A stretch of DNA of 64,000 bases. Origin: Blastocystis sp. Blastoise. Taxonomy: Eukaryota; Protista; Bigyra: Opalinata. The stretch is taken from NCBI GenBank assembly GCA_039096225.1, contig JBBPEB010000025.1, positions 1 through 64,000 of the forward strand. The letters run 5' to 3'. A program made the translations under genes and the position numbers. Shown here piece by piece: positions 3,902-34,335 of this stretch; positions within the stretch are counted from its first letter, which is position 1; each line of letters starts with the position of its first letter. Below the pieces are notes generated by a model, which did no database searches, had not been told where the DNA came from, and was given only the letters and a program-made list of their open reading frames with translations.

Positions 3902-5390
3902 TTATGCTCTTCCCCATACTTCATAATCTTCTACTGTAAACTTATTAGTAGAATTAGAGTTATTTGTATTTACAAATAATGAATGTTTTTGAGGAGTATT
4001 CACTTGAGAATAAGAAGATGCTTTACAAGAAGAATTAGTATTACTATGACATTGATCAGATATATAGATATCACAACCACATCCAAATATGGGACCATAA
4101 GAAGAATAACAATATATAGCTTTACTTCTATCACTATTTATATAATCATATTTAGTAGGAGGAATACCATGTTCATTAGTTAATGTAAAGAGAAATTCTT
4201 TAGAATAATTTTTCCAATCTATATAAATCATATTGAATAATTATATAAAATAAATATATATACCTGAACCAGCCCAACTTTGATCTGTATATCCTCCAAA
4301 TATATTAATATGATTATTATGACTTATATGTTTAATGATAGTTACTGTTTCTCCTTTATTATCACAATATCTATGGAATTCGTCTTTTGAATAATTATGT
4401 TCACTTGCTCTATATATATATATATATATAATATAATATAATAAAGTATAAATACCTAAATAATAATTTCCATTTCTTTTCTTTACCAAGCCAATTCATT
4501 AAGGGTATTTCCATGGATTTATTAGTAAGTATACGTGTATAGGGGAAATATGAATAAGGGATTATACATTCATCCACTATATTTATTACTTTATCACCAA
4601 ATAATCTACACATTTCATTCTCTAATAATTCTTTATTAATATTCTTTGTTTCTTCTTCAGATACATAAATACAATTATATTGAATATATTCATAAATATA
4701 ATCAATATATGTATAATCCATCTTCATAAACATTTCATTATTCTTTTCGTCATAATCTACATATCCATCATCATATTCATTAACAATCTTAGTCCATAAT
4801 CCATTCTTCTTCCAATAATCTCTTAATATATCATCTTTCTTATCATTTATATAAAGAATAACATCATCACTTTCTTTATATTGTTTCATTTTATGATCTC
4901 TTCTATAATAAGTTTTCATTAATTCTTCAGGCATAGGTAGATTACAATATTCAAATAAATCTAATAATTCAATTTGATCTCCAAATTTCAATTTATCAAT
5001 ATTTATTTTCTTATTCATTAAAGAATCAATTAATAAAGGAAAAAGTGTTTCATCACCACGATAATCAAAAAAAATAGTACCATCAACAGTTCTTTGATTT
5101 TCTTGGGAATATTCATATAAATAAGTCCCAACTAAACTATTTGTTATTCTTTTAGGAAGAGAATAAACTGGACCATTATTAGTGAATCGAATATAATCAA
5201 TTCCATTATCATTATTATACATATTTAAATCATTTTCATTCAGAAAAGAAGATTCTTGGATAATTATATGTGGATCATCACCATTCTTATCCTTCATTCC
5301 TTCACAATTTCTTGTTAATCGATTCACTAATTCATTTATAGACTCACCTGAATGAATACAGAAACTTATTGACTTACTTAAAATACCAAT
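3902..5390 (-). pseudogene. 3' part of a TLDc-domain protein gene (BTB-like N-terminal region), cut off from its start by the outer CACTA insertion
   Basis: Exons 5390-4456, 4409-4264 and 4218-3902 joined by GT-AG introns 4455-4410 and 4263-4219. They give TLDc motifs WKLLFRASEH..FHRYCDNKGETVTII..IFGGYT..FLFTL..GPIFG.G.DIYI..F.VEDYEVW. The reading frame continues upstream only at 34243-34335. Confidence 0.85.
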
Positions 5391-5479
5391 CACTAGTAGG
5401 CATATTTACGGTTTTTCTGGCACTACTACATCGAATTGGCAATATTTCCGCAATTGTTAAAATTGCAACTGTAAAAATG

Positions 5480-5599
5480 GCAATTATTGCGATTGCAGAA
5501 ATGGCAATTATTGCGATTGCGGAAATACCAATTATTATAACTTCGGAAATACCAATTATCACAATTGCAGAAACAGCAATTATTACAATTATAGAAATC
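5480..5599. repeat. Subterminal 24-bp tandem repeat (5 units plus degenerate upstream copy), consensus about GCAATTATTGCGATTGCAGAAATA
   Basis: Units at 5480, 5504, 5528, 5552 and 5576, starting about 90 bp inside the left TIR. Contains the inverted motif GCAAT-T-ATTGC. Confidence 0.85.
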
Positions 5600-6044
5600 G
5601 GTTTAAATATTCGATCTATTAAATTCAAAAAATTTTCAGTAATATTATTAATCTACTAATATTTAACAAAACAATTTACTTTTTTATTAAAAAACATATA
5701 AAACACATATAATATTTAAAAATAAGTAGAGAAATAAGCGTTTAATTGTTTTCTCAACTAATGAAGACCAAATCATTTCTGAAAAATAACTCTAAGCAAT
5801 TATAAACATCTAAAATAAATAAACAAGATATAATGATATATATACAAACAAAGCAATTTTTGAATTAAATTTGTATCTACAAATTTTAAATCGAATTCTA
5901 AATAATATAGTACACAAATAATATAGCATACATAGATAATGGTAATAATTGAAAAACTAGCATAGTTTGAATACTATATATAGAACTATAGTGAATAATG
6001 GAAAGAAATAATACATAAATATACATATATACAAAAATAATATT

Positions 6045-6755
6045 CAACAATGTATTAAACCAGACAACAACTTTTCATCCTATATATATTTTAGTTAATA
6101 AATTAAATATATATATATACAGCACAAATACTTGGCAGCAAATCAAAGAACCAAGTATAAAAGTGGTCTATAAATATTTAACAATTAGATATAATACATA
6201 ATAATATATATATAAATATATCTCTGTATGTATATATATTGTATATGTAGAGTATCAATTTATTAAAAGTATTAAACATACTAAAATTCATAATTTATAT
6301 AATTTTCTTGAAGCTTAGCCAGTAAGGACAGTTTTTCGCTGCAACCCTTACACAAATCATCAAGAATACGATATGCTGTATAAGTAGCAGACTATAGAAA
6401 TAGAATAAAATAAGTATAATATAAATATATATACAAATAATGAATTTGTTTCTATATTATTTTGAGCACCTTCATCATTAGGAAAAGATATTGGTGATAT
6501 TCTAAAGAATTTTAGAATCGAGCTTTTGTATTTTTTGTTTCTGAAACAGTTAGCAACCACTATTTGAACTTGAAAAGGATCATTAAAATACTCAGCATCT
6601 TCATCATGTAAAGTATTCCATATAATTGACGATATTTTTATAAATAAATCGCTATTCAAGTTTAAATTATACGCATCCTTTTTCTTTTCCCACATATATA
6701 TAGAATTCGTCCGTTCTTCGTCAGATAAAACCATAGGAATTAAATTAACTGCATC
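6045..6755 (-). CDS. 3' exons of accessory gene B of the outer element (5' exons at 20937-21260)
   Basis: The acceptor at 6756 is followed by DAVNLIPMVLSDEERTNSIYMW..., which aligns by eye with accessory gene A NCLKYIPYVINEGDLIDAKNMF. Intron 6434-6392, then SATYTAYRILDDL. The 3' end is approximate. Confidence 0.75.
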
Positions 6756-6829
6756 CTATATATAAAATAATACTTAACACTGGTAGGCACTTTTGAGTTT
6801 TTGAAGGTTTTTGATTGGCTAATTTTCGT

Positions 6830-7650
6830 TCAAGACTCATTCAGCCAATAAAATTTGAATAAAAAAAAGACTTAGGCAAAAAAATGAAAATTTTGTGAAA
6901 ATTTTCAAGTCGACTTTTGATTTAGACTCAAAGACCCTATTTGACATATTTTAACAAAGAATTGACATTATTTTTTATATATAGAGGGTCACACAATATC
7001 CAAAACGTTTTTCTTTTGTTTTAAGTCGTAATTCCGACAAATAATGGGGTCAATATTTTAAAACCTCTTGTTGCTCTGTTTAAAGTTTAAACCCTCTGAA
7101 AGTCACAAGTATGTGTAAAAGTGAATAAAAAGACCTCTATGGGTCAAAACCAAAATTCAGCCAAAAAGTCAAAAATTTATATTTTTTTTACACTGAAAAA
7201 ATGAACCGAGCCTATTTGTTCCATGGGTAATCAGACCAGAGTTTTCAATTTTTAAAATATTTACGGGAATAATTTTCTCGTTCAAAACTGAGTCTATTTA
7301 TATTTTATTGAATATCAGAGGACATAAGAGTTCTATAAAAGGTTTTTCATTAAATTTTATTATGACTCAAAGTTCCGCATACAAAAAGTATGTCAAAGCT
7401 TATAAATAAAGGGTTCTTTTTCAGAATCAACTAAAAGTCTTTTTTTAAGTCATTTTTAGAGTTAATTCTTCAACGGATGGACATTTTAAGTTATAATTAA
7501 TAGTTTTTGGACGAGTTAGTCAACAGATCAGAGAGTCAACAAAAATGAGTTATTTTTTAAAGGTTAAAAGTGTGGGATGCAGTAGTATTGTATAGATGGT
7601 GTAGTGTGAAACGTGTCATAACTTATAAATATGATAGTGAGTCATAAAAA
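6830..7650. promoter_or_regulatory. TGAC/GTCA/GACTC-rich subterminal region of the inner element (candidate transposase or accessory-protein binding sites)
   Basis: Dense short motifs (gactca, gagtca, aagtca, gggtca, gtcac) in both orientations. A similar block lies at the equivalent end of the outer element. Confidence 0.55.
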
Positions 7651-8282
7651 ATTAAAAAAATTAAAGAAAGGTATTTTCATGAAAAATTTTGTATTTCACT
7701 TGAACATTTGAATTTATTAGTGAATTTATAATTATTTTTATTTTATTGTCTCTAAGAGGAATTAGAGCTTCTCACAGTGTTTATGTATGTTTAGAAGACA
7801 AGAATGTATTGTGTCAGTATTTATTTATTAAATATTTTATATTTATTTTCATAATTCTTTTAGGTTTTCCATTCTGGAGTCCCTCTTCGTATCAGACTGT
7901 CTCCTTGGTCAACCTCAAAAATTTAATCAACAGAGTTGCTGCTACTTTTGTTTAACAAGATTATTTCCTTGTTCTTATTCCAACGCTTTCAAGAAACAAC
8001 TTGCCATGCTATAAAAAGTATATAAATGTATTATTTGTTTTTCTATTCATTACTTTTTTTTTCAATTACTAAATATAAATATGTTTTTAATATTGGCTTA
8101 TTTTAAATTGTATACAATTTATATTAATTATAATTTATATTATATAGAATGATAGGTTTTGTTGTCTATTCATACATCAAATTGTTAGTTAAGTCCTGTT
8201 AAAGATTAAACGGTATATAGATAGAAATTATTATTAATATTATTATTATTATTATATATTATATTATTATTATTATTATTTG

Positions 8283-8318
<36 letters not shown>

Positions 8319-8411
8319 TGATTATTTATTACGGGTATTCTTTAAACAATTAATAAATTACCCTATAATTATTAATAATTTTTTTATTTTCTAAAAATAT
8401 TTTATATATAG

Positions 8412-10147
8412 ATCTAAAAGAGATAGTTCTAGACTAAATAATCTACATATAAATTCTAATAAAATAAATAAAATTGATATAAATGGATCAGCTATAAATA
8501 ATATGAATAAAGATAAAAATAATAAAGAAACAGATGAATCGAATCTCTCTCTTAAAGATAATTCTATTTCTATAAATAATAATAATATACATTCAAATAA
8601 ACATCGTAAAGAATCAAATGTTTCTAATTCTTCATCTTCTTCATCTTTATTTTCATCTCAAGATAAAAATACAAATAATTCAAAAGATATATCAAATAAT
8701 AAGAATAACTCTGCTGTTAAAGGTAATAGTATTCATGATTCTTCTAAAAATATTATAAATTATATAAATTAGATGAATAATAGAAATCATAGTATTGATT
8801 ATTCAAATATAAATAATATACAAGAAGAGGAAAAAGAAAGAAAAGAAGAAAGTATACCAGAACAAAAAGAACAAAAAGAAGAAAAAATAGAAAAACATAA
8901 AGAAAAAGAGACAAAAGAAGAAAGAAAAGAGGAAGATGATGATGAAGAAGAAGAAGAAATAAAAGAAAGAGAAGAAGAAGAAGAAAAAGAAGATAATGAT
9001 AATGATGATGATACTACAAGTATAATAACAGATACCGATAGAGTATCAAATCCTATTATTCGTGGCCGTGGTCGTGGACGTGGTAAATTACGATCTCATG
9101 GAAGAGGAAGAGGTAGAGGAAGAGGAAGAGGAAGAGGTTCATTCTATCATTATGATGATAGTGATAATCAAAGTGAAAATGAAAATGATGAAACATTTGA
9201 AATTGATAATGATAAAAATGATAAAAAAGAAAATTATCATTCTATTTCACGTCATAATTATGATTCTACTTATAATATAGATGGAAATGATTTAGATAAA
9301 TATAAACGTAAAGGTATGAATATGAAATTAAAAAAAAATAAACGTCGTAATAATGATGATGATAGTTCTGATGATTATGTGAAACATAGAAGGAATAGTA
9401 TTTCTAAAGAATCTTTAAAGAGAAAATCAAGTATTAAAAGTGATTATTCTTCTATAAGTAAATCAAAAGAAGATAGTATAAAGAGTTCTACTATAAATAA
9501 TTCTATAAAAAATAATTCTATTCATATTAATAAACCATTATCTTCAATAGATGGTAAAACATTATTAGATCTAGAAGGATCTACTCATAAAAATTCACGG
9601 TTATTTGAAGAATATCATTCTATGGATTTATCAAATGAAACTAATAATAATAATACTAATGGTAATTATAAGAATAATAATAATAATAATTCAAATAATA
9701 ATAATCAAAACTCACCAACAGATACAGTATCAACAAATTCCCGTGGAAATAATTCATCAAATAATCATGCTAATGATAAATCTACTACTACTAATAATAA
9801 TAATACTAATGCTTCTAAAGATATTCCTAATGATAAATTTATTGATAAATCAGGTATATTAAATGATACAAAGAATGATCATGAATCTGAAATGGATATA
9901 GAAAAAGAAGAACGAAAACAATTACCTTATATTAATCCACCTCCAAGAACATGTATATTAAATAATATATAAAAAAGAATGCTCATTATATCAAAGAATA
10001 TAAATATAAAATACAAAATGAAAAAGAATTATAAATCAAATCATAATCATGAAGAAGAAACAAATATAAATGTAGATATGAATAATATTAGAGATATAAC
10101 GATCCAAATTCAAGATAATTCAGTAAAGAATTCAATGAGAATTTAAA
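8412..10147 (+). pseudogene. Cargo: low-complexity N/E/D/K-rich protein gene fragment with RG repeats, interrupted by stops
   Basis: ORFs 8503-8772 and 8773-9972 are in the same frame, separated by one TAG. The frame stays open past TAA 9972 to about 10147. Contains an RGRGRG tract and acidic runs. Acceptor-like atatag near 8411. Confidence 0.6.
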
Positions 10148-10499
10148 ATACTCTATATCGTTTTTTTAATTTTTGTCTTCATCTCATTCTATATATCATG
10201 TTATTAAGAAACATATTTATTATCAAAACACAACTATTGGATGTTCAAATCTATATTGATAAATTTATTCAATAGAAGTCCTTTCTTTAAGTTCATACTA
10301 ATGAAATTTGATCAACACGATTTGAAATTCATTAATATAAATATATCCATGATGACGCATTACTTTTTTGTTTATGAACATGAAAAGGGAAATGTGATGA
10401 ATATAATTATTCGATCATTAATTACTTTGATAATATACATACAAATATTTCGATATCTATATAAAAACTTTCATTCATCTGCTCTTATAAATAATTCGT

Positions 10500-13400
10500 G
10501 AACAATGTGTTTTCTTCAATATACAATATAATTCCTTCTTATTATTCTACTTCTAATACTACTAACATTAATATTATTATTATTATTATATACTATTATT
10601 ATACTATTCTTTTATTATTCTTTTAATGTTATTCTTTCTACTATGAGTTCTTATAAAGCTAAGCATATTTAAATTATGGTTACTTTTCTATAATGATAAT
10701 AATGGTTCCTTTAATATTACTACTAATACTTTTATTGTTTGTGTTATATACTGACACTATTATTATACCTTCTTCGTTATACTAGTAATTATATTCTTAT
10801 AAAATTTCAATCTATCCTGTTATTATTTTTTTATACTATCCAAAAAATACTTTTATAATTCGTATATTATTACTATATTGTTATATATAAATTTGTTGTA
10901 TTATTATTCCTATAATATTACTGATAATAATTATTTCTGCTTCTACTATTTTTATCTCTTACTATGTTATTAGTTGGGTTATAACTATTTCTGCTTGTAT
11001 TTCATTAATTATATCACTATTACAATTATTGCAAAGCTATTATTCTTACTGGCTCATTATTTGTCTATTATTCTTCTAAAATAAAAATTATTACTATTCA
11101 TATGATTCATTTATATGATACTATTACTTCTATTATACTCCTATCTACTATGACTACTGTTTCTACTTTTAGTAATTTTATTTTCATGCTATTATCGTTG
11201 TTTATGTAACTATTGGTAGTACTATTACATACTACAAATATTTAACACTATTACTACCATTCCTATATTTTAATAGCACTTATTATTACTATTATTACAA
11301 TAAGTATATAAAATATTATGGTTAAAATGTATAGAAAAAGCAAAAAGCAAAATATTTTCTGGATAGAATATTATTAGTAATAACAATATAATTAATACAA
11401 TGTTTAATTTTTTATAATATTTAAAATATCAAATAGTATACGTGAAATATTTGATCGAAATAAGATTATAAACTATATTAGATATTAGTATAGTGATATA
11501 ATTAATGGCAGATTAATAATATAAGATAATATATTAGAATATGAAGTATAAAGTAATTATTGCAATCATTATTTAATATAATATTATTTCCATTGAAGAG
11601 TTATTATAAAATAAGATATGCAAAGATAACGAGTTTTATAAAACACGAATATAATACTATCATAGTTTATTATATCTTATTGAAGGAGAGCAAATATTAT
11701 TTAATATAATTAATAATGAAAGCATACTAATCTAATTTAAAATTCCAGATTATTTAATGGTTTCTCTTCATTTTTTAATGAAATAATTATGCAGATTCTT
11801 ATTATTATTAGCATTATAAATCTTGCTATTACATGTTATATAATAATTTTTAATATAAATTTTTCTAGAACTTAAACTTAATATATCAGAAAATATAAAA
11901 AGAAATATCATGGGACATATATATAAATAATATATGATACGATTTTAATCGTTATGAAGCATACACTAAGTTCCAATTATGTATTGTTCATTATAAGCAA
12001 TTCATATAATACATGATATTTTATTTGTACTACTACATTTGTTTTTATATTGTTATATAAAATATTATTTTAATAATACTACATATTATGTAGCTTTACA
12101 ATATTAAACTCTTAATATTTATGTTATATTTTATGCCTTTAGTTATGTTTGATATTCAAAGTATTTTACTGGTCTTAATAAGTATTTAACATATTTAAAT
12201 GCATATTTATATTTTATGTATAATGGGTTATTATTATATCATTATATGGATTCCTATAAAGTAATTAATACTTTATTAGATATACAAATGAGACTATTCT
12301 CTATATTTTTTTGAACAATATGTTATCTTCATATTACCTTTCTCATTTTGTATTAACCACTTTATTGATCTTTTAACAATTATTAGTGTTATCTCAAACT
12401 ATCTATTAGTAATTAGTTGTTACTAATACTTATTTCTAATTTGAGCACTCAACTATTCCTATTGAATATCTGCTATAATGCAATTATTGATGATGTCTGC
12501 ATTATTGAAGATCATTCATTTTGTTTGTAAACTATTATTAGTATAGAAATTCATTAATAGTATAAAATAAATATTTAATATTTCAAATGATATAATGAAT
12601 TGAATAAAGATTTCTATTATATGTATACTATGTCCATACATACTATGAATAATGATACTTATATTTCAGTATATTTAATATTCAAGAATTATCTATAACA
12701 ATTATCAATTCTCTATTAATCTTATCCTTCAATTGATAATGTTTTATATTCGTATTATTCCTATAAACTATTATTCTTATGGTACTACTAATTATAGTGT
12801 TATGATTTATATATTTTTTTGTATCATTATATATATGCTGTGTCATTTTTATTATGAATCGATGATTAATTTAGAACCATTTATACTTATTTATTATATC
12901 TAATATTGTATTTACTTCTATATCTGCATTTTTTTTTATTCCTATTATTTTATTTTACCGTTATATACTAATGTTATTCATACTATAACTATGTTCCATC
13001 AAATTTAATAGGAATTATCATAGTCACGTCAACTTAATGTCCTACTTATTACTACCACTTCTATGTCAATACTTATAACTAGAACTAATTCTATATAATA
13101 ATCAATACTATATTTAAAATGCATATAATTGAACAACTACTTCGTAATAATGTGAATATAGTTATTTATATGGACAATAATAACTCCCTTGATCCTAAAT
13201 GTATTGTATTTAAAGTAATAATTTTGCATCAAATTGATATTAAATCTATCTATCTATCTATCTATTTGTTCATAAAATTTTTAGTTATAATAATAACTAT
13301 CTTAATAATGATAATAGAATAACGTTAATCCTTATAGAAAACTATTAACGAAATCGAATAAATTATTCTTCTAACTATACTTCCTACATCGACATATTTC

Positions 13401-14050
13401 TACAAGCTAGTCTTCATCTTATGTATAGCTATTTTTTTTTATAAATTATGAATTATGCTCTAAACAGTAGATGAGGTAAAGATCTAATAGTAATATTCAT
13501 TTAATTTATTATCAAATAATGTTATTTGAAGAATTTGCATACTATTCATAATAGAATACATTTCTCCTAAATTATTCATTCTAACAAAACTCCTGATGAT
13601 TATATATAATCACTTTTGTAAGACCTTAAAAATATATTAACTGATATGATTATTTTTTTTTAAATATTATTTAAATATAGATAAATAAATGTAATAAACA
13701 TTACCCATTTAAATTGTTATTTCACATAATGAAAGAAATTTATATTGCGTTTATTCTTCTAAATAATCTTCTCTTTCTGTCATATTTTATTACTATATTT
13801 TAAATCATTACGTCCTATTATATTTAATTGGCATGTATTTATTGCTACAACTCTTGTATTACTACAATATAACTTGATTCTTTATACATTATTCCAACAA
13901 TAATACTTTATTTCTTCATTTTAAATGTATACCTAGCATTAATGAGAATAGTTCAAATATATTATCTCATTTTATCTGATTGTTTTATGTAGTAATAGTT
14001 CATTATTAAATTTAATATTGATTAATACAAAGAATATTGATATTATTTGA
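10500..14050 (+). pseudogene. Cargo: heavily decayed S/T/I-rich coding-like sequence, possibly from the giant surface-protein family
   Basis: Residual TCT/ACT/ATT codon periodicity on + with many stops and no long ORF. Composition resembles the sense strand of the 36.6-60.4 kb gene. Not aligned computationally. Confidence 0.35.
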
Positions 14051-14325
14051 AATACAAAATGAAATTATTACATAACTTTAGTTAAAATACGTTAAATATA
14101 TTATAAGAATATAAAAGAAATGGATATTAGATACATATTACAAGAATGTAAAAGATAAAATCATGTATAACATAAAAATATATATATATATATATATGAA
14201 ATTTAAATGATTTATAATATGAAAACATAAAAGAAAATGATATTATATATAATATAATAAAATTATTAGTATTTATAATATAAAAAAGTAAAGGTTATTG
14301 TTATTCATATATTGGCTATCGCAAT

Positions 14326-17300
14326 TATATTGAAATTTTATTACGAGTCATAAATACAGTATTTGTGATAACTGTATTAGAAGTCACAACCCTTTTATTA
14401 TTTCCTTCTTCTCCTTCCTTTTCCTATATACATAAATAATTGTTATATTAAAGAGAATATATATATACATACATTTTCTGGAACATATGAGTCATCAACT
14501 TTTGTTTGCCTATATTCATGAATATCTGCAATAATCAAATTATCTGGTTCAATATTACATATAGATATAAATTTTGGAAAATCTCGTTTTCTTTTTGATA
14601 AAATTTCATTTGAATCATTAATAATATAGAATAATCCTGTATTAGATATTCGTACTTCTGGATATTCATATTGTTTTATTATTACCAACGATCCTATTTG
14701 AATGTAGCAAAGTGATTTAATTAAATGTACCTTTCTTTCTCTTCCTTGATCATGTGTGAAATACATTATGTATGAGTTATCAGTGGTTTCAATCCCTTCA
14801 TCTATATCTGAACAAGTAAATATAACTGAATCGTTTATTAATACTTCTGAATAAAATGTCATAGTTATTCTTCTTAAATTATTAATTATAATATTACATA
14901 TGTTAGAATCAGTTAGAATATCATAAGGAACAATATCATTTTTATTTACATTATGGAACAGTATTTCTTTGAGTGACTCATCATTTGATGCTAGAATTAT
15001 GTTTATTATTTCTTTCATGTCATTATCAGATAAGTCAATTCTTTCTGATCCTCGAATTCCTTTAACGGTACTAATTTTGTTTCTATTAACTATAATGGTA
15101 TTGTAACTTTCACATACTAATTCCTTATTTGATATATCATCGTTAATAATAGATTCCTCTTCATTATATAGTTCTTTATTAATCTCTAGTTGCGTTTCAT
15201 CAGTTATATCATCACTTATATTAGTTGTTGTATTCATATCTGCTACTTCTCTTTCTATAATACGTCTAATAGACGACTCATTAAAATTCTTTCTTCCAAA
15301 AGAAATTCTTTTAAGAAAAGAATAAAACCTTTCTGATTGATAGGTAGATCCAGAGAAGATAGAACCAGAGTTTATTATTGAATAGTAAAGATGTTGTACA
15401 AGATGAATTTGAGTATTTAGAAGCTCCTTTGGTATCAAAAGCTCACACAAAAAGCAAAATATATTACATTGATCTCTAAACACTTCCAATAAATGCTTTG
15501 ATGTATTACCATGATATAGGTATACTTGACGTATTATTGTAGCTAAAGGGTCAATAAGTACAACAAGTGGTGAATCACTGGAATTAAAATCTAAAGTTAT
15601 TAATGGAAGAATACAAGAAGTGAAGAAAATCCTTGTGTGAGAGGACATGTTCCAAAATTTTTTTTCATTTAGAATATACCTAAACTCATATTCATTATCA
15701 TTATATAGTGTATTAATGGCTAAAATCCTGGAGTTAAGAATTGATATATTTTCATCTTTTAAACAAAATGTACTAAGAATTGATTCAGGGTTTAATGCCT
15801 TATTTTTAGATATCTTAGAAGTATAATCGGCTACATTGTAATGAAATAATAAATTTAAAATTAGAGTACAAATATTATTGAATAGATGCATGGGATCTAG
15901 TAAATAACTAGTAGATGCATCAAAGTATGCCAATGATTCGAAGATACCAGGATTATGTTTAATACCTAAGAAAGATCCATTTTCAGATGAATTGCATCTA
16001 TTCATATTTATTGTTTCTTGTGTTCTCTGTGAATATTCCTTTTCTTCAAAAGCATCATAGTATATACATTCATTAGGAAATTTGTCAATAATAGTATTAG
16101 TAGTAACAGGTAAATCATCTATAAGAGGAGTAGTTGGAGATATATTAGAATCATTTATGGCTACAAAAACAGAAGGATATAGAATTTCATTTATCTTTTT
16201 CTTATCTTCTGTTAAATGAATATATTTCTTTATACTCTTATAAGCACATTTTATACCTTCGTGAAAGCCTTCGTTCTTTCTATTCCAAGAAATCTCACAA
16301 TATCTACATGGGAATGTTGAAGAGGGTCCAGTAAAGCTTCCAACGCTTGTAATAGCCATACAATCCCCATAAACATTTAGTAGAACTGCTACAACTCGCC
16401 TTTTTTCAATTCGTTCATTAATAAATACATCCATTTCAATTCCAGATGATAGAAGAATTAACTCTTTCATAAGTAATGCAAGAACAGTATTAGATAGCGA
16501 TTCTTTTGTTATACAATATGTCCAGAATACTCTCTGATCATGTAATCTAGTATTATTATAATTTAATAATTTAAGAAGAATAGGAAAAGATGATTGATTA
16601 GTATCAGAGATAGGATTTGAAAAGACACAAATTCCATCACAAGTTAAATCAAAAAATAAGAAAATATCACCATTATTAATAACTTTATTCATATATTTGC
16701 GATAATTTTGTCCTAACATATATTCTGGAATTGTACTTGGCAAATGTTCTATTGGTATAGATAAATAGTATTGAATTTCCTCCTTCTTGTAATAACTAAT
16801 ATCTTGTATTAATGGTTTAGAAGACATCAAGTAACGTATACGTGGGATTAAAGGTATAACAGACACTTTTATGCCTTTATATAAATAAAATATTAATCAG
16901 AATAATGAAAGTTAATTTATATTCACATATAAATAGTGTATCATATACTATAAGAATATATATAAAACGTTATATATAATAAATAATATCTTGTATTGTC
17001 ATATATTATATGAAGAAAAGAAAATAAATATAATAGAAAGAATAATAATAAAAAGAATAATAGTAGTATAAATAGAAATGAATTATATATATATATATAT
17101 ACTTTTGCTTTCACTACATTCCTCGTTTTTACATTGAGTCTTTTCTTTATTAAGTAGATTTCTTCCTCCATTAAATGATACTAGTTCTTTACAATTATCA
17201 CATATGTAGATATTTTTATGTAGTGGAGTTTCAGAATGGCAAGAACAGTATTTCCGTATTATGTCCTGTCCATTCTTGGGAACAAAAAGTAATTCATGTT

Positions 17301-17748
17301 CAGGAACCAAAAGTTTTATGACATCATTTATTAGTTCGTATAGTTTCTTAATCTTCTCCGTACTTATTTTAAGCTGACACCAACAATCATAAACGAAATC
17401 TTCAATTCTTGAATTATCATTTATATTATTTTTTGATGATGGCTTCTAAATAGTTTAAAGAGAGTTATATGAAATAAAAAATATATAAAATAAAATATTA
17501 TAATGTTTTTAAAATACCGAATTTATAATTTTTTCCAAAAACAAATCAGATATTTGTTTAGTAGTGTTTGAGTTCACGTCTTCATCTGAATCTAATTCTT
17601 CCATCAAGTGAGAAGTTTCGATGATTATATTCTCTTCATGAAGAGAGACATGATCAGTTGAAATTGCTAAATATATAAATAAAATTAAAAGTCTCTTACA
17701 TCTACGTTTTGATGGAAACCCAGGAAGATCATATTGACGTCCTGTCAT
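14326..17748 (-). CDS. CACTA/CMC-type DDE transposase of the inner element (multi-exon)
   Basis: ATG 17748. Introns 17699-17667, 17517-17446 and 17102-16875. N-terminal Cys cluster (CDNC..CKNEEC). Core motifs LTCDG, YGDCMA, FPCRYC, LDPMHLFNN, QIHLVQHL..G.I..ST.QSER are typical of CMC transposases. The last exon below 14470 is uncertain. Confidence 0.88.
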
Positions 17749-18972
17749 TGTAATGTTGAATATAATTTTTTAATTTTTTCTGATTATTTCCTTTTTTTTC
17801 ATGGATAGAAATACTTTTATAACAATTATTCCCAATAATTTTGGTTTCTTAATGAAGTTCATGGTTATGTGTTAACAATTTTTGGAATTACATAAACTTA
17901 ATGTCGGCATGATTTTTATGATTGTAGATTATTTGAATGAAAAATTGATGCTTAATCTTTATTTAGGTAGTTAAACACAAAATAATGTTACAAATGCAAA
18001 TATTAGAGAATATTGGATTTATATTAGAATTAATTTATTGCTGATATTTCAAAATAGCCAAATTTTTCAATATGGAATAAGTTGAATTAAGTTTTTACTT
18101 TCATGGATAAATGATTAGAGAACATATTTACTTTCTATCTTGTTTTTTTCTTCTAATTATTTTCATAAATAAGCGTTTCAATATTAAATATTTCTTTATG
18201 AATAATTTGTTTACATAGAAATGATAATAATATATTTATATCTATATTAACAATTACAAGAATTCTTACTATATGATTCAAACTGTAAATTTAAGCAATA
18301 TGATATATTCTTATATGAATTCTCAAGATGTATATGGTTTAGTAGTATATACTATTATATACTAGAATATATTTTAATTATATTCTATAATATTTTTCAT
18401 ATTTTGTGTTAATAAATCTTTGAATATTTTTTATTTTATATATAGTTTAGATAGTATCTTACAACAATCATTTAATTAAATGAAATAATAAGAAAGTAAT
18501 TGAAAATACACAAAGAATTATATATATATATATATATATAATTCCTTTTATTATAGTAATTCTTCCTCTCATTTTTATTTCTAATTTAGATTGATTATTT
18601 ATATAATTTATTTTAACTTATATAGTTTTCAAATGAAAATAATATTATAAATGATAGTTTGTATACTATTAATATTATCATCTTCTTAATTGAATATCTC
18701 ATTTAAATACTAAGAAACATATTAACGTTGTTCTTATCTATATCCTGTATATTAAGTATATTATTAATAATACAAAATTGTATAATTTTCTTTTTGTTTG
18801 ATAAACCAATTTTTGCAACAAGATCATCAATTATAAGATTTACAGAAATAAATATATTACATAAATATAAATAAAATATATTTTAATAAAATTATTATAT
18901 TTGTTTTAAGACAAACAACAGAAAAATAAATAAAAAAAGATATATTTTTTTATCTTTAGCTTATCGTTAACC

Positions 18973-19930
18973 ATGCAACAAAAGTAACATAAAACTATTT
19001 TATATAATGTTTATACTGGGAATTATAGAAATACTGCAAAAAAAAATGATATTGAAAGAGTAAAGAAATTTAAATTGAAACTGTTTGGAGCTTTTCATGA
19101 GTTTTATCGTTCGATACTATATCCTGAAATGTTAAGTATATTAATTATTAATTATATTACATTTTTAGAAACAAAAAAATGTCATTATTTGACATATGAC
19201 ATGGAAACATTCTTTCGGAAAGAAGCTCTCAAAAGAAATATAAATGTGTCAGCTAATAAAGCTTCGACAAAACAAATAAAGGTATATTATACTCTTATAT
19301 ATTAGACTTCAATACTATAATTTCTATTAAAAATTTATAGAATTGCTTAAAATACATACCCTATGTTATTAATGAAGGAGACTTAATAGATGCAAAGAAT
19401 ATGTTTATTGAAAATAATGGTAAAACACTTCTTGATGATGAAAATAAATTATTGGATATTATTTTAAAAATAGTAAAGGATTATATGTGTCAATATAAAA
19501 ATGTCGAATCACTAAGTGATTACGATATTATTAGATGTGTGAAAAAATCTCTTTATGATAAAAAGACTCATGGAGACTTTGCGTCTTCCTTTGGGTTTTT
19601 ATTACTAGATAAAGATGGATATAAAGTAGAAGATAAAAAAAAAATAAGAAGTGATTTTTTGGTATGTATTATATATTCTATATTAACACAAAAATTTAGA
19701 TGAATTATCATATATAGGTTTTGCAATGGAAAAGGAATCCAGATTTTTTTGATAAAACTACGTATGCGTATAAAACAAATTACGTAGTCATCGAAAGATT
19801 GCAGAATAGTTATGACAAACTTATGGAACACAGTCTTCGTCATTCACAAGTATATCCTATTGGCTATTTATTTTATTATTGTTTCTTTATTTTATAAAAA
19901 TCTAAAATAAGTTGACGCAGTTGAATCTCA
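18973..19930 (+). CDS. Accessory gene A of the inner element, unknown function, divergent from the transposase
   Basis: ATG 18973 and several short GT-AG introns give MQQKNTAKKNDIERVKKFKLKLFGAFHEFY..DMETFFRKEALK..STKQIK|NCLKYIPYVINE..VLQWKRNPDFF... Homologous by eye to gene B. The 3' end is approximate. Confidence 0.72.
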
Positions 19931-20936
19931 TATATATTTAAGATATAAATTGTTTTATATTTTATTATTATTATTCTATTAGGTTTTGTATATTATACTA
20001 TACTATAAAATATTTTCTTTATTTATAATTATCTTTATATAGTAATGAAATATACATTAGTTATGACGTCATGAATTCTTAGATCCTTAAAAACTTATTC
20101 ATTTATTATAATAATATATTTAAAATGTATGTATTATATATATATATATACTAATTTTCATTATTTTTATATAGATTTATTACAATTTGTAAATATAAAG
20201 CATTCTGAGTATATATCTTTTCATTTATTTTATTAATTCTTTTTATATAGATTCTTTTTGATTGTATAATTGCCCGTTACATTCAGTTTAATCTATTCTA
20301 TGTATATATATATATATATATTAAATATTTCTATACATTATTTATTTCATATAATTTATAGATCAGTTTTTCTTCCACAATAATATGAGCAGTGCCTTTA
20401 ATTGTATAAATATATTTATTATTGTATGATATACTATTACTATTTCTATTCATTCTTATTTTTATTTATATAGTTGATTAATATTTCTTTTATATGTTAA
20501 CTAAATATGAGTTATGTAATGCTCTTTAACAAAAAGTTGTTGTTATTATAAATTTTAGTTATAAATCATTGTTTTGTTTGTTTTTACTAATGTTTATATT
20601 GATGTATATTAAAACTAAAAAAAAAACTATTTTTTTAATTAATAACTCTTTTAAAGAATATTCTATAGAATTCTGGAAATATTATATATTATCGTTAGCA
20701 ATAATTTTCCAGAAAAATCGTGATAATACTATTGGACTATTTTCATTATTTTATTGGTTAAATATCATTAATAAACTAATCATATTTTATGAAAGAACAT
20801 AGAAATTCTATACATCTGAAACAGTCTTAAAAATATTTAGCAACAATTTCTAGTTTGTCTTATTTTTAGTCCCATGAAAAATGCCTACCAGTGTAATATG
20901 TAATGATTTTAAGCTAAATAGGTAAATAATACATAC

Positions 20937-21260
20937 ATATATTTTCTTTTTTGAAGATGTATAAGATCCAGAATATCCAAGGTGTTTTACACAGAGTTTT
21001 CTCAAAAAGACTTCAACTTCCATGTCACAGGAATAATTATACGGTCCTAAAACAATTACAAAATAATAAAAACTTACAATACCACCATTAATCAAGTCTT
21101 CGAACCCTTTGAAAAAGGATTTGACTTGTTTAACTGTTCTTCGTTTTAGTCGATGAAGTGATTTCAATTTTTTCTTACCATGTGTTTTATTTTTATCATA
21201 AGTAACAGCAGAAATGGTTTCATCTGTTGATGAAATATCGCTAACCACTGATGAATTCAT
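20937..21260 (-). CDS. 5' exons of accessory gene B of the outer element
   Basis: ..KQVKSFFKGFEDL..EVEVFLRKLCVK..SSKKKIY| with a GTATGT donor at 20936. Matches gene A KKFKLKLFGAFHEF..METFFRKEALK..STKQIK| with the same intron position. Confidence 0.75.
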
Positions 21261-22414: not shown

Positions 22415-25408
22415 AATAAAGCAACGATTTATGGATCAAAATCAATTAAAGATGAATTAGAAGATGAAGCCTATAAGCTGTGGGTAACGCTGGAACTTCC
22501 ATATGAAAAATTCCATGATATTTTAGTTTATACAAATTCAACGTTCAAATTGGTAGATAGTAGTTATAGTACACTTCTGAATAGCAATTATGACTCACAA
22601 ACATACATCAGAAGCATTAGATCTAAACAATTCTTCTTTCCAGCTTCATTGAGACTTTATATATGTCCTGAATGTTTAAAAATTACAAATGCTACATCTT
22701 CTAGAAACAGCCTATCTTACGACGATATTAAATGTTTCGAGCATAACGATATTTCAGATGATAGTATATATATATAATGATATTTAAGTATCTTAATAAA
22801 TACTTAATAAAATTGTACTATTCACTATATTCTATAGAAATATATCATACAACAATACTTCCTATTATCCCACGAATAAAAAGACTTCTTTCTAATGCTG
22901 ATCTTCTAGAAGATATATCGTTTTACAAGAAGGACGATATAATGCAACTGCTAAGTCTTCATAGTCATGAAGACTATTATATTCAAACATCAGAGATGGA
23001 TACTCGTAACATAACACAAAATACATTAGTTGATATCCCTTATTTCTTTTATGGTTCTACATTTTATAAATATACGCAACCTCTTGTAGAAAAAGGCGAT
23101 ATTTTCCTCTTTTTTTCTGTGACTTCTGATGGGATAACTGTATTTAATAAACCTCAAAAGGAAGAAAATAAATCCAGTTATCCTATAACTCTTAAACTTC
23201 TTAATTATAACCAGCAACGGAAATATGATCATCGAAAATTATGGTGTTATGCATGCCCCACGAGTAATATGATCTCTCCCTTAATTGATATACTTAGCAG
23301 CGAGTTTCAACTTTTAAATGAAGGCTTAGATATTTATATAGATAGCATTCAACAAACAAAACGGGTAATAGGAATTCTACTCAATGTATATGGAGATTAC
23401 CCTGCAGTCTCAAAAATGGTAAACACACCTTCATCTTCAAGTGTACACCCGTGCCGTTTTTGTAGAATGACAGTACGTAGATCTAGAGATTCTGCATTTC
23501 ATGAAGGAATCAAGTGTTGTTATGAAGAATCTCGAGAATTCAGAATTTCAGATGAAGGAATAACAACATTTTTTATACCAACTTATTGTCCAAATGATCC
23601 TATGAATACAAACAACATTATAGTAGATTACATCGATGAATCAAATATTGATGCAAATATGTGTGTATCCTTATCATCACCATTAGAGATTCCTTCATCA
23701 AGCATATATAGTGACTCGTTAACATTATATAGTCCTGTTCTTCGTTCATCTGAATCATCTTCTTCAATAATACCTGGAACAAATGAAGTGAGTCCAGAAG
23801 AAAGAAATCTAGGATTCAGTAAACTTACATACTTCAATATACTTCAATCATGTTCCCTTGATCCAATGCACTTAATAAATAATGTAGCTACATCACTCAT
23901 GGAGTACCTATGGAATTATCCAAAGACAAACGCTTATTCCAAATTAAAATATACTATGTCTCAAAATGAAATGCAAGACTTCATTACAAGAATATCGCTA
24001 AATGAGGAAAATAAGAAGATTATTATGGAAAGAATAAAAGATATGAATATATTATATGATACTGATATGTATCAACTTATATCTATTCTAAATGACTTGA
24101 ACTTCTATTCATCAACATCACATACACGTATTCTTCTTTTTTCAACAGTATTTCCTATCCTTCTATCTGATTTTACTTATGAAGATTCACCTTTAATACT
24201 AATAATAGAAATATTTGGTTCTCTTATTAGTGATATAATGAGAATTAATCCAATAACAGAAAAGGATAATCTACTCACTTTTGAGAAGAAATGTATTCAA
24301 TTCGTATCCATAATTGAATCTATTCTACCTTCTGCTTTAATAACAACTCAAATTCATAGTATAAAGCATTTAGCGTCATGTATCAGGGACTGTGGTTCTC
24401 TTTTCTATACTTCGACTTGGGAAGCAGAAAGATCATATCGTAATATCAAGAGAATAACTAAAGGAACAAAATCGTTTAATGAGTCAGTAATAATCAAAGT
24501 TCAGGATCAAGAATCAATACAGATACATATAGCACCTCAGATATCTTCTACTACTGCTGATAACAATACAAATGACGGTAGATTTACATCCTTACAACAT
24601 AAAGAGATTCTAATTAAAGATAATCCAGAAATAAAATCATTTAAAGGTAAAGAAAGCCACTCTCTGCCAAATATCATAGACAGAGATAAACTTGCAATAA
24701 TATTATTATTATCTTCTAAATGCTCTTCTTTAATTCAATCCAAGCTTTTTTCGGAAGTATTTCATGAGTCAGACACTCCTTATAGAAGAGAAGAGATAAT
24801 AAGAAATAACATAGATATCCAAACCAAATTGCTTGATAAATTTAAATTACTGAGAAAATATTGTTATGATTCTGTTATAGTGAATAATAATATTCTATTC
24901 AGAGTATATAAAGGATTAACAGAAGGAGCCAAAAATAATTCATATATATTAAGAATCTCCCCAATCCAGTCTAATTCTGGAGACTTTGTAATGCATCCTT
25001 TTTTGTATAGTATACTATCTTTCATACAAATAGAAGACGTATTAATATTAAAGTTGCATAAGTATCCTGTTTCAAACTACAGTCAATCAAGACTATATGC
25101 ATACTTTATTAATCGTTCTAAAACAATTACATCCCAACTAGAGACAGATTACGAATACTTTCTTTTAGACTCAATGAAACCATTTAATATTATATGTGTA
25201 GATTTCGGTATATCGAAAGAAATAACTAATGATATCAACGGTGAATATGTAAGTAATCTATTGTATTTCAATATATATATAATTTCTATAGATAGGAGAG
25301 AATAATAACAACAACTCAACTTTGAAGAAGATAAATAGAAAGGATTCATATGTTGTATCTGTTTTTATACCATACAAAGCAATTTTATATGAAGATGATA
25401 ATAACTAA
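22415..25408 (+). CDS. CACTA/CMC-type DDE transposase of the outer element (multi-exon; true start further upstream, unresolved)
   Basis: Exon 22415-22763 (CPEC..C..H), intron 22764-22837, main exon to 25248, intron 25249-25291, stop at 25408. Motifs VTSDG, YGDYPA, HPCRFC, LDPMHLINN, QIHSIKHL..G.L..ST.EAER. Collinear with the inner transposase. Confidence 0.88.
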
Positions 25409-25521
25409 ATTTTTTTAATTATGTTTCAATGTTTATTATAACTTTCTAATTTATATAATAGTCTATTCCTGTTATATTAAAAAATTGTATTTCTTTATCT
25501 ACATTCTTTGTTTTGTTATAA

Positions 25522-26290
25522 AATAAGTAGATGTTATAAGGTATAAGTAGATTTTATAAGGTATAAGTAGATATTATAAGGTATAAGTAGATATTATAAG
25601 GTATAAGTAGATATTATAAGGTATAAGTAGATATTATAAGGTATAAGTAGATATTATAAGGTATAAGGTATAAGTAGGTATAAGTAGGTATAAGTAGGTA
25701 TAAGTAGGTATAAGTAGGTATAATAAGATATAAGTAGGTATTATTAGGTATAAGTAGGTATAAGGTATAAGTAGGTATAAGTAGGTATAAGGTATAAGTA
25801 GGTATTATTAGGTATAAGGTATAAGTAGATATTATTAGGTATAAGGTATAAGTAGATATTATTAGGTATAAGGTATAAGTAGGTATAAGTAGGTATAAGT
25901 AGGTATAAGTAGGTATAAGTAAGTATAAGGTATAAATAGGTATAAGTAAGTATAAGGTATAAGTAGGTATAAGTAAGTATAAGGTATAAATAGGTATAAG
26001 AAGGTATAAGGTATAAGTAGGTATAAGTAAGTATAAGGTATAAATAGGTATAAGAAGGTATAAGGTATAAATAGGTATTAGAAGGTATAAGAAGTTATAA
26101 GGTATAAGAAGTTATAAGGTATAATAAGTTATAAGGTATAAGAAGTTATAGGGTATAATGTATTATACGTTATAAGAAGGTATAAGAAGGTATAAGAAGG
26201 TATAATAAGGTATAAGGTACTAGAAGATATTTTGTATAATGTATAAGGTATAATGTATAAGGCATTATAAAGTATAAGATATAAGAAAAT
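25522..26290. repeat. Compound minisatellite: 20-bp ATAAGGTATAAGTAGATATT units grading into 10-bp GGTATAAGTA and 7-bp GGTATAA variants
   Basis: Directly visible and almost devoid of C on the + strand. Lies just downstream of the outer transposase stop. Confidence 0.93.
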
Positions 26291-33559: not shown

Positions 33560-34230
33560 AGAGTGTCATTATGGGAATTTTTTTTAAAGAAATCCTAATT
33601 AATTTATTAAAATTTATTTATCTCTTTTTATCATTTTATTTTATTTTATTTTAATTTTTTATGTTCAGATAAACTAGATATATCATATGTGACTCATTTA
33701 TATGATAATTCTTATTTTACAAGTCACCTAACACATTTACTGATTTTGAGGTAAATATTATTATATAAACTCATTGAGTTGCTAATCAGACTTGAAATGA
33801 TAGCGTAAACAATAGTATAATTGTATAAATATTCAAAAATTAATATTTAAAAAGTTGACTGAATTACGACTCCTGTCTATTTGTTTTCAATAATAGAAAT
33901 AACTGTCACATTACAGATAGTTGTCTATACATAAGTATATAATTAACAAACAACAACTCTTACTTGCCTAATTGACTGATTATAAAAAGCCTTTAAAAGT
34001 GACTTATTTTTGCCTTTCTATGCCTCAGACACCACATTAAGTCATTATTATGTGTTTATTGTCTAAAAGGACTCTAAATGAAAATTCATTAATTAAACTT
34101 TTATCAAAAATTTCTCTAAGTCAGTGAAAAAGAGTCAACCTTTTGCATTTTTTGAATTTAAAAAAAATATTAGGTTATCCCCATGGGAAATACACCTTTT
34201 TGACTGAAAAAAAAATACCAAATTTCTTCG
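33560..34230. promoter_or_regulatory. TGAC/GTCA-rich subterminal region of the outer element
   Basis: Dense gtgactca, aagtca, ttgact and gagtca motifs. Shares a TTA(T)CCCATGG-like segment (about 34175-34190) with the reverse complement of about 7215-7230. Confidence 0.55.
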
Positions 34231-34242
34231 TGCCTACTAGTG

Positions 34243-34335
34243 AATCAAATCACCAATCAGTCTTTCAAAATGAATTACATCCTTCTGAACATCACCAATC
34301 TTATTACCATCAAATTCTACCTTCTCTTTCACCAT
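34243..34335 (-). pseudogene. 5' end (31 codons) of the disrupted TLDc gene
   Basis: ATG 34335: MVKEKVEFDGNKIGDVQKDVIHFERLIGDLI joins in frame through the TSD to GILSKSISFCIHSGES at 5387. Confidence 0.85.

Follow-up and report, generated by a model that had tools for sequence, protein, structure and literature searches.

What is the small protein encoded head-to-head with the transposase in two nested transposons of a gut protist, and what does it do for them? The question is raised by a 64,000-nucleotide stretch of Blastocystis sp. Blastoise (assembly GCA_039096225.1, contig JBBPEB010000025.1, positions 1 to 64,000), hereafter the window, in which one transposon of the CACTA type (element 1) lies inside another (element 2). 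Each element carries a transposase gene (T1 and T2, respectively) and, divergent from it, an accessory gene (gene A in element 1 and gene B in element 2). Our answer, to which we give a probability of about one half, is that A and B belong, as functional genes, to a single transposon-borne family and that its protein acts as a TnpA-like DNA-binding partner of the transposase. The span 18973-21260, on which the question centres, takes in gene A completely, together with one end of element 1 and its 1-kb subterminal region; of gene B it includes no more than the 5' third. The genes concerned, and the spacer between two of them, lie in the window as follows.

14443-17748, minus strand: transposase T1 of element 1; main open reading frame (ORF) 14443-16866, further exons upstream, ATG at 17748
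17749-18972: spacer between the starts of T1 and gene A, 1,224 bp; ATGs from annotated protein P0017 and the gene A model
18973-19897, plus strand: gene A, accessory gene of element 1; exons 18973-18983, 19029-19135, 19169-19281, 19341-19661 and 19718-19897 (including the stop codon)
20937-21260, minus strand: 5' part of gene B, accessory gene of element 2; exon 21260-21081, a 36-nt in-frame intron, exon 21044-20937
6281-6755, minus strand: 3' part of gene B; large conserved exon 6755-6432, last exon 6391-6281 (including the stop codon)
22420-25305, plus strand: transposase T2 of element 2; main ORF 22777-25305, zinc-finger-like upstream exon from about 22420; the start is approximate

Homology and structure of genes A and B

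The original prediction had aligned genes A and B by eye along their length. In direct comparison this alignment is not significant. Smith-Waterman alignment with shuffles was no better than chance for the large exon (p = 0.7) and gave p = 0.03 for the upstream exon, and tblastx of element 1 against element 2 recovered the transposases only. The relationship emerged from profiles instead. A hidden Markov model (HMM) of the A clade, made from nine A-like subfamilies, matched the gene B exon with an E-value of 2.6e-6 at Z = 1e6, and an HMM of intermediate subfamilies matched A at 1e-16 and B at 1e-12. When the A-clade and B-clade profiles were aligned with each other by hhalign, the probability was 96.5% and the E-value 8e-10 over 89 columns. 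A search of the genome with the large exon led to 44 places for A and 30 for B; the two lists overlap and comprise 49 loci together, and iterated exon profiles unite all 20 subfamily loci. Judged from profiles and intermediates, A and B are homologous. The motifs picked out by eye, E.F.R+, IP.V and LF, are confirmed as true family motifs.

The same prediction included a conserved intron, which was indeed found. A phase-0 intron precedes the '..IP..' exon at the same column and in the same phase in 19 of the 20 subfamilies. Its donor is GTA and its acceptor TAG or AAG, and it measures 34-62 nt in subfamilies S1-S16, for which the boundaries of both exons could be resolved. One subfamily, on contig C30 (L019:6777-7460, minus strand; P0001, KAK8807855.1), has lost both introns flanking the large exon exactly. 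Its conserved region is a single ORF of 228 amino acids, still head-to-head with a transposase, and the sequence reads as a clean intron loss inside a DNA transposon. That P0001 is a domesticated or retrocopied host gene was considered and rejected, because the divergent N-terminus of a transposase lies 1.3 kb away.

The model of gene A was built by comparing element 1 with the sister subfamilies S2 and S3 (about 67% DNA identity), with the annotated protein P0007 and with splice sites. Coding blocks are conserved among element 1, S2 and S3, whereas the short introns between them are unalignable. The model agrees exon for exon with P0007, a 227-amino-acid protein of a sister subfamily; both start with an 11-nt first exon, and the next intron is 45 nt long in gene A and 41 nt in S2. 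The introns of gene A measure 45, 33, 59 and 56 nt. The intron of 33 nt is in frame and would translate as a hydrophobic stretch if read through. We rejected this stretch as a coding or membrane segment, since most subfamilies have a stop codon there and the annotated models splice an in-frame intron of 33-36 nt. A 38-nt intron variant in gene A was discarded as well, since it would disrupt the reading frame.

A 136-codon ORF (21260-20850) accommodates exons 1 and 2 of gene B. The intron that follows, about 62 nt long in intact copies, is cut at 20894 by element 1, and gene B is thus broken in the window. Intact copies are annotated as P0015 (contig C5) and P0009 (contig C8). The truncated annotated model P0014, which is identical in sequence, is probably this copy of gene B. 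Exons of genes A and B were searched singly, and full-length work was done on the database proteins P0001, P0002, P0005, P0007, P0008 and P0015. Spliced models exist for several family members in the annotation of the genome, which was aided by RNA sequencing (RNA-seq) (PMC10690189). One annotated protein, P0010 (KAK8797050.1; on a 905-kb contig), has 1,141 amino acids and joins an accessory-family N-terminus to the body of an ABC transporter; it may stem from chimeric gene modelling or from a transcript in which transposon and host are fused. P0013 (365 amino acids) is an extended model that resembles P0010.

Linkage and co-divergence with the transposase

T1 matches the annotated protein P0017 (1004 amino acids) with 99% identity, and its ATG at 17748 was taken from that protein. 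With the ATG of gene A at 18973, the two starts are 1,224 bp apart and the genes are divergent. The ATG of gene B at 21260 lies about 1.2 kb from the start of the upstream exon of T2. The layout that had been proposed, head-to-head across about 1.2 kb, therefore holds for both pairs, with divergent transcription that we infer from orientation and from the RNA-seq-aided annotation. The spacer 17749-18972 is presumed to be a bidirectional control region, its promoter activity likewise being presumed.

The two transposases are homologous but diverged, with 32-47% identity in blocks. DUF4218 was matched at an equivalent position in 11 of the 12 transposases scanned, with only 13-22 bits where the cut-off requires 27. 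The single match to Transposase_21, of 13.8 bits, is below threshold. T1 has a weak DUF4218 match, and T2 matches both DUF4218 and Transposase_21 weakly. The upstream exons of T1 (17083-17310, minus strand) and T2 (22550-22777, plus strand) encode a cysteine-rich, zinc-finger-like segment, whose match to RYYR-CCHC is weak (16.6 bits, below threshold).

The pairing is not peculiar to the window. It had been proposed that homologs be checked for linkage to transposases throughout the genome, and the nearest transposase homolog is divergent in 47 of the 49 large-exon loci. The gap to it is less than 6 kb in 45 of those 47, with a median of 1.9 kb, and a transposase N-terminus is present at all 20 subfamily loci that were fetched. 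The remaining two loci (C1 and C10) are without a transposase and represent one truncated 2.4-kb end fragment, duplicated. Since every copy found otherwise adjoins a transposase, the gene appears, in this search of the organism's own genome, to be confined to autonomous elements.

The two genes have also diverged in parallel. Across 18 subfamilies, distances between accessory exons correlate with distances between transposase N-termini (Mantel test, Spearman r = 0.75), and none of 5000 permutations gave as high a value. This correlation indicates that both genes have been inherited together since the family radiated. The accessory protein evolves about twice as fast as the transposase N-terminus. 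Between subfamilies the large exon has 0.28-0.41 nonsynonymous substitutions per site (dN) and 1.2-2.1 synonymous ones (dS), the latter saturated, and dN/dS is about 0.14-0.30. By these ratios the accessory gene is under purifying selection.

Predicted fold and proposed role of the accessory protein

The protein had been described as unrecognised, and our searches agree. No Pfam family was matched, Transposase_24 (PF03004) included, at E <= 10 for eight pieces or proteins and at E <= 1 for 34 members, and a profile search of PDB sequences gave no match. An exhaustive HMMER search of 1.84 billion protein representatives gave 12 matches, of which 11 are 'hypothetical proteins' of this genome and the twelfth is a low-complexity repeat protein. 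No family member was thus found elsewhere among these representatives, which are limited to public annotated proteins; sister tortoise isolates may lack gene models. Word-based protein searches found this genome's own proteins only. A feature search of the ESM Atlas gave no match, and the quality of the model that the Atlas holds for P0001 is low.

AlphaFold2 modelled P0007, from a checked alignment of 34 rows, with a mean predicted local distance difference test (pLDDT) score of 93.7 and a predicted template modelling (pTM) score of 0.85. A run on the core only (P0007 residues 66-200) gave the same secondary-structure elements. In the model, a long helix at the N-terminus is followed by one that bears the E.F.R+ motif, then by a helical core containing two small hairpins, and at the C-terminus by another long helix. 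We are confident in the prediction that the accessory protein is a compact, helix-rich alpha/beta domain. An earlier description of it as a basic helical protein is therefore right in part: most members have an isoelectric point (pI) of 9-9.7, about 9.5 in the A clade, whereas the predicted fold is alpha/beta. Structure prediction had been proposed together with a Foldseek search; the former yielded this confident fold and the latter no clear structural match.

What might such a protein do? In maize En/Spm and its relatives, TnpA binds subterminal repeats and regulates the element promoter (PMC1636069, PMC13547354). Elsewhere among CACTA elements, a poorly conserved second protein binds subterminal repeats, regulates the promoter and is needed for excision (PMC1636069, PMC4158355, PMC13547354). 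That the present protein is expressed, binds DNA or takes part in transposition is inferred, and by analogy with these elements we favour the role of a DNA-binding partner. The family would be a fast-evolving one of about 210-255 amino acids, and its genes would be confined to the autonomous CACTA-type transposons of this lineage of Blastocystis. Its gene would always lie head-to-head with the transposase across a spacer of 1.1-2.5 kb, presumed to be a shared bidirectional control region. In the predicted structure a core of three helices and a hairpin bears the most conserved motif, DKK.KG....FFGF, which is basic, and long N- and C-terminal helices appear to clamp this core. The protein may work in trans as a DNA-binding partner of the transposase, doing the job of maize En/Spm TnpA although its origin would be independent. 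It may recognise subterminal or control-region sequences of its own element, and binding there could help to assemble or regulate the transposition complex.

The structural comparisons offer a lead in this direction. Weak matches of the core are mostly to small winged-helix DNA-binding domains or to parts of transposases and transpososomes, with Z-scores of 4.1-4.8. P0007 residues 66-165 superpose on linker histone H5 (65 of 74 residues, 2.8 A) and on the WHB domain of APC2 (68 of 72 residues, 2.9 A); other weak matches include cullin WHB, E2F/DP, Stn1, part of the P-element transposase and one chain from the TnsABCD transpososome entry. In the winged-helix superpositions the root-mean-square deviation is 2.7-3.5 A and the matched domains are covered almost end to end, whereas Foldseek gave E >= 1. 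Compared with the winged-helix domains, the predicted accessory structure has an additional insertion of a helix and hairpin, and long helices flank it. Because the scores fall within the range common for the tool, a winged-helix-like core is a lead and not a finding.

Several observations weigh against a DNA-binding partner of the transposase. Foldseek searches of PDB and BFVD gave nothing better than E of about 0.4 to 1, with E >= 0.3 throughout, and a shape search of the ESM Atlas reached a template modelling score of at most 0.36. An aligner independent of Foldseek gave Z <= 5.0, which is within the range that its notes call common. Cullin WHB domains, which are among the weak matches, bind protein and not DNA. 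Members of the gene B clade are near neutral overall, although their N-terminal patch is basic. In every annotated model of gene B, an in-frame GT..AG segment of 90 nt is removed as an intron (window 6501-6590, minus strand, and the C5 and C8 copies). The most conserved motif of the family (NKK..FF) is encoded there, and the splice reflects either an alternative isoform or an artefact of annotation. The ends of the elements are asymmetric (window 6778-7200, 33850-34242 and 5440-5600). Short scattered motifs of the GTCA/TGAC type occur at the ends distal to the gene pair and transposase, and a 24-bp tandem array (5440-5600) lies beside the accessory-gene end of element 2 only; no motif common to these ends was defined, and no repeated one was tied to the accessory protein. 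Finally, some transposase-bearing copies, on C16 and C23 (two on the latter), have no detectable accessory exon within about 5.5 kb, and one copy keeps only a remnant of it. The copies on C16 and C23 may be decayed ones. The rule of pairing is therefore valid for subfamilies and not for each decayed copy.

A different function for the same protein is the chief alternative, though we regard it as the less likely one: an element-encoded regulator rather than a part of the machinery, that is, a repressor or activator of the shared promoter, or a sequence-specific anti-silencing factor such as VANC of VANDAL (Mutator) elements or TnpA on the Spm promoter. The accessory gene and the transposase flank the same 1.2-kb control region, and TnpA itself regulates its promoter (PMC1636069). 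The family evolves very fast and yet co-diverges with the transposase; for example, transposase N-termini with 37% identity go with accessory large exons of about 13-15%. Such a combination is expected for element-specific recognition or for an arms race. The weak structural leads and the basic charge fit a regulator as they fit a DNA-binding partner. On the other side, the spacer, which was not examined in depth, yielded no operator-like repeated motif. The data do not separate a regulatory role from one in the transpososome, and the two roles are not exclusive.

That the gene is passenger cargo, a host gene captured once by an ancestral element and without a role in its life cycle, is improbable. 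Elements 1 and 2 do carry 7-9 kb of other material, but among the 49 loci there is no copy outside a transposon, and among the 1.84 billion representatives there is no homolog in other organisms. Position and orientation are constant in 20 subfamilies, down to a transposase identity of 32-37%, and neither the co-divergence nor a dN/dS well below 1 is what cargo would show. It is more improbable still that there is no functional protein and that annotation made gene models of chance or decaying frames: several models are truncated, chimeric or inconsistently spliced (P0004, P0006, P0010 and P0013, and P0009 compared with P0015), but 46 of the 49 copies keep the 107-codon large exon open at a guanine-cytosine (GC) content of about 20%, exon boundaries are conserved beside introns that cannot be aligned, dN/dS is 0.14-0.3, and the confident AlphaFold model was reproduced in two runs from a shallow alignment.

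If the accessory protein is a DNA-binding partner of the transposase, how does it relate to the second proteins already known? Like plant TnpA (Transposase_24, PF03004), it is a small, non-catalytic, fast-evolving and lineage-restricted protein beside a DDE transposase. It has, however, no sequence match to PF03004. Plant families use one spliced transcript, with TnpA made from the TnpD transcript by alternative splicing, or head-to-tail genes (PMC1636069, PMC13547354), whereas here the gene is separate and head-to-head; the contrast with canonical En/Spm drawn in the original prediction is thus a real one. For the globular part of TnpA a small beta-barrel has been described (PMC13547354); for the accessory protein the prediction is a helix-rich alpha/beta domain. 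The accessory protein is not of the TnpA family by sequence or gene arrangement, and probably not by its predicted fold.

CACTA elements carry, besides the transposase, an ORF2 of unknown function without detectable conservation between lineages (PMC4158355, PMC1636069). The accessory family fits this fast-evolving, lineage-specific pattern, as does PrA of SmTRC1 from Schistosoma. The products of SmTRC1 arise by alternative splicing of one unit, while here a divergent gene has its own promoter side and the host is a stramenopile gut protist. A lineage-specific ORF2 is already expected for the superfamily; the head-to-head layout is a real difference. Separate, lineage-specific and fast-evolving accessory genes beside a transposase are also found in Mutator-type elements, namely mudrB of MuDR and VANC of VANDAL, and the action of VANC on its own family of elements is sequence-specific. 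PMC13547354 also mentions VANC. As with mudrB and VANC, the accessory gene is separate from the transposase and carried by the same element. They belong to another transposon superfamily, and no sequence or structural match to them was found here.

A stronger form of the argument would make the accessory protein a structurally new, obligatory and co-evolving second subunit of CACTA transposition, independent of plant TnpA; PDB, ESM Atlas and BFVD hold no match to it. We put this forward only tentatively and think it doubtful as it stands. Were it true, CMC transposases would repeatedly have recruited unrelated DNA-binding partners, and a defined two-protein system would be at hand for a protist without genetic tools.

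To our knowledge, the second protein of CACTA elements is almost uncharacterised outside flowering plants. The present case is a recently active stramenopile example with about 20 subfamilies, a fixed two-gene module, co-divergence and a confidently predicted fold without a known relative. It lends itself to testing how a cut-and-paste transposase gains a partner and co-evolves with it. It also helps annotators to recognise Blastocystis 'hypothetical proteins' and chimeric models as transposon genes, and an active two-component transposon could in principle serve as a mutagenesis tool in Blastocystis.

The nested elements and the rest of the window

The source genome is that of Rus-B, the Russian-tortoise isolate of Blastocystis sp. 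'Blastoise', which has 33.3 Mb, 23.1% GC and an RNA-seq-supported annotation (PMC10690189). Its introns are longer and more variable than the 30-nt introns of human subtypes, and its stop codons are canonical (PMC10690189). In the paper on the tortoise Blastocystis genome, transposable elements make up 5.6-7.5%, and the present CACTA elements are not described there (PMC10690189). GC content in the window is 17-30%. A search with the terminal motif recovered two nested pairs of inverted ends in the window, with the following starts of terminal inverted repeats (TIRs) and target-site duplications.

5391-34242: outer CACTA element (element 2), from the terminal-motif search; TIR starts CACTAGTAGGCA at 5391-5404 and 34229-34242
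5388-5390 and 34243-34245: target-site duplication of element 2, AAT, 3 bp
6778-20893: inner CACTA element (element 1), 14,116 bp; TIR starts CACTGGTAGGCA at 6778-6791 and 20880-20893
6775-6777 and 20894-20896: target-site duplication of element 1, TAA, 3 bp

The TIRs of both elements have a start of the CACTA/CACTG type, and subfamilies S2 and S3 have the same end. By its ends and its target duplication, the host element is of the CACTA type. The insertion of element 1 falls within an intron of element 2's accessory gene, gene B. Near-identical copies of element 2 lie on contigs C5 and C8. In the copy on C5 (L026) the insertion point is uninterrupted and carries a single TAA. The window and this copy thus form a pair of filled and empty sites, which proves the 3-bp duplication and the jump of element 1 into element 2. 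Other genomic copies of both elements are 95-99% identical, which indicates that elements 1 and 2 were both active recently.

Between the transposase and the far TIR, each of the two elements carries about 7-9 kb of extra material. It includes a 399-codon ORF (window 8773-9972, plus strand) without a Pfam match. In element 2 a tandem-repeat region at about 25520-26290 is multiplied in the copies on C5 and C8. Outside both elements, at 37660-60444 on the minus strand, the window holds one intronless ORF of 7,594 codons with Laminin_G_3, many He_PIG, HRM, WSC and PA14 domains, which looks like the gene of a giant adhesin-like surface protein.

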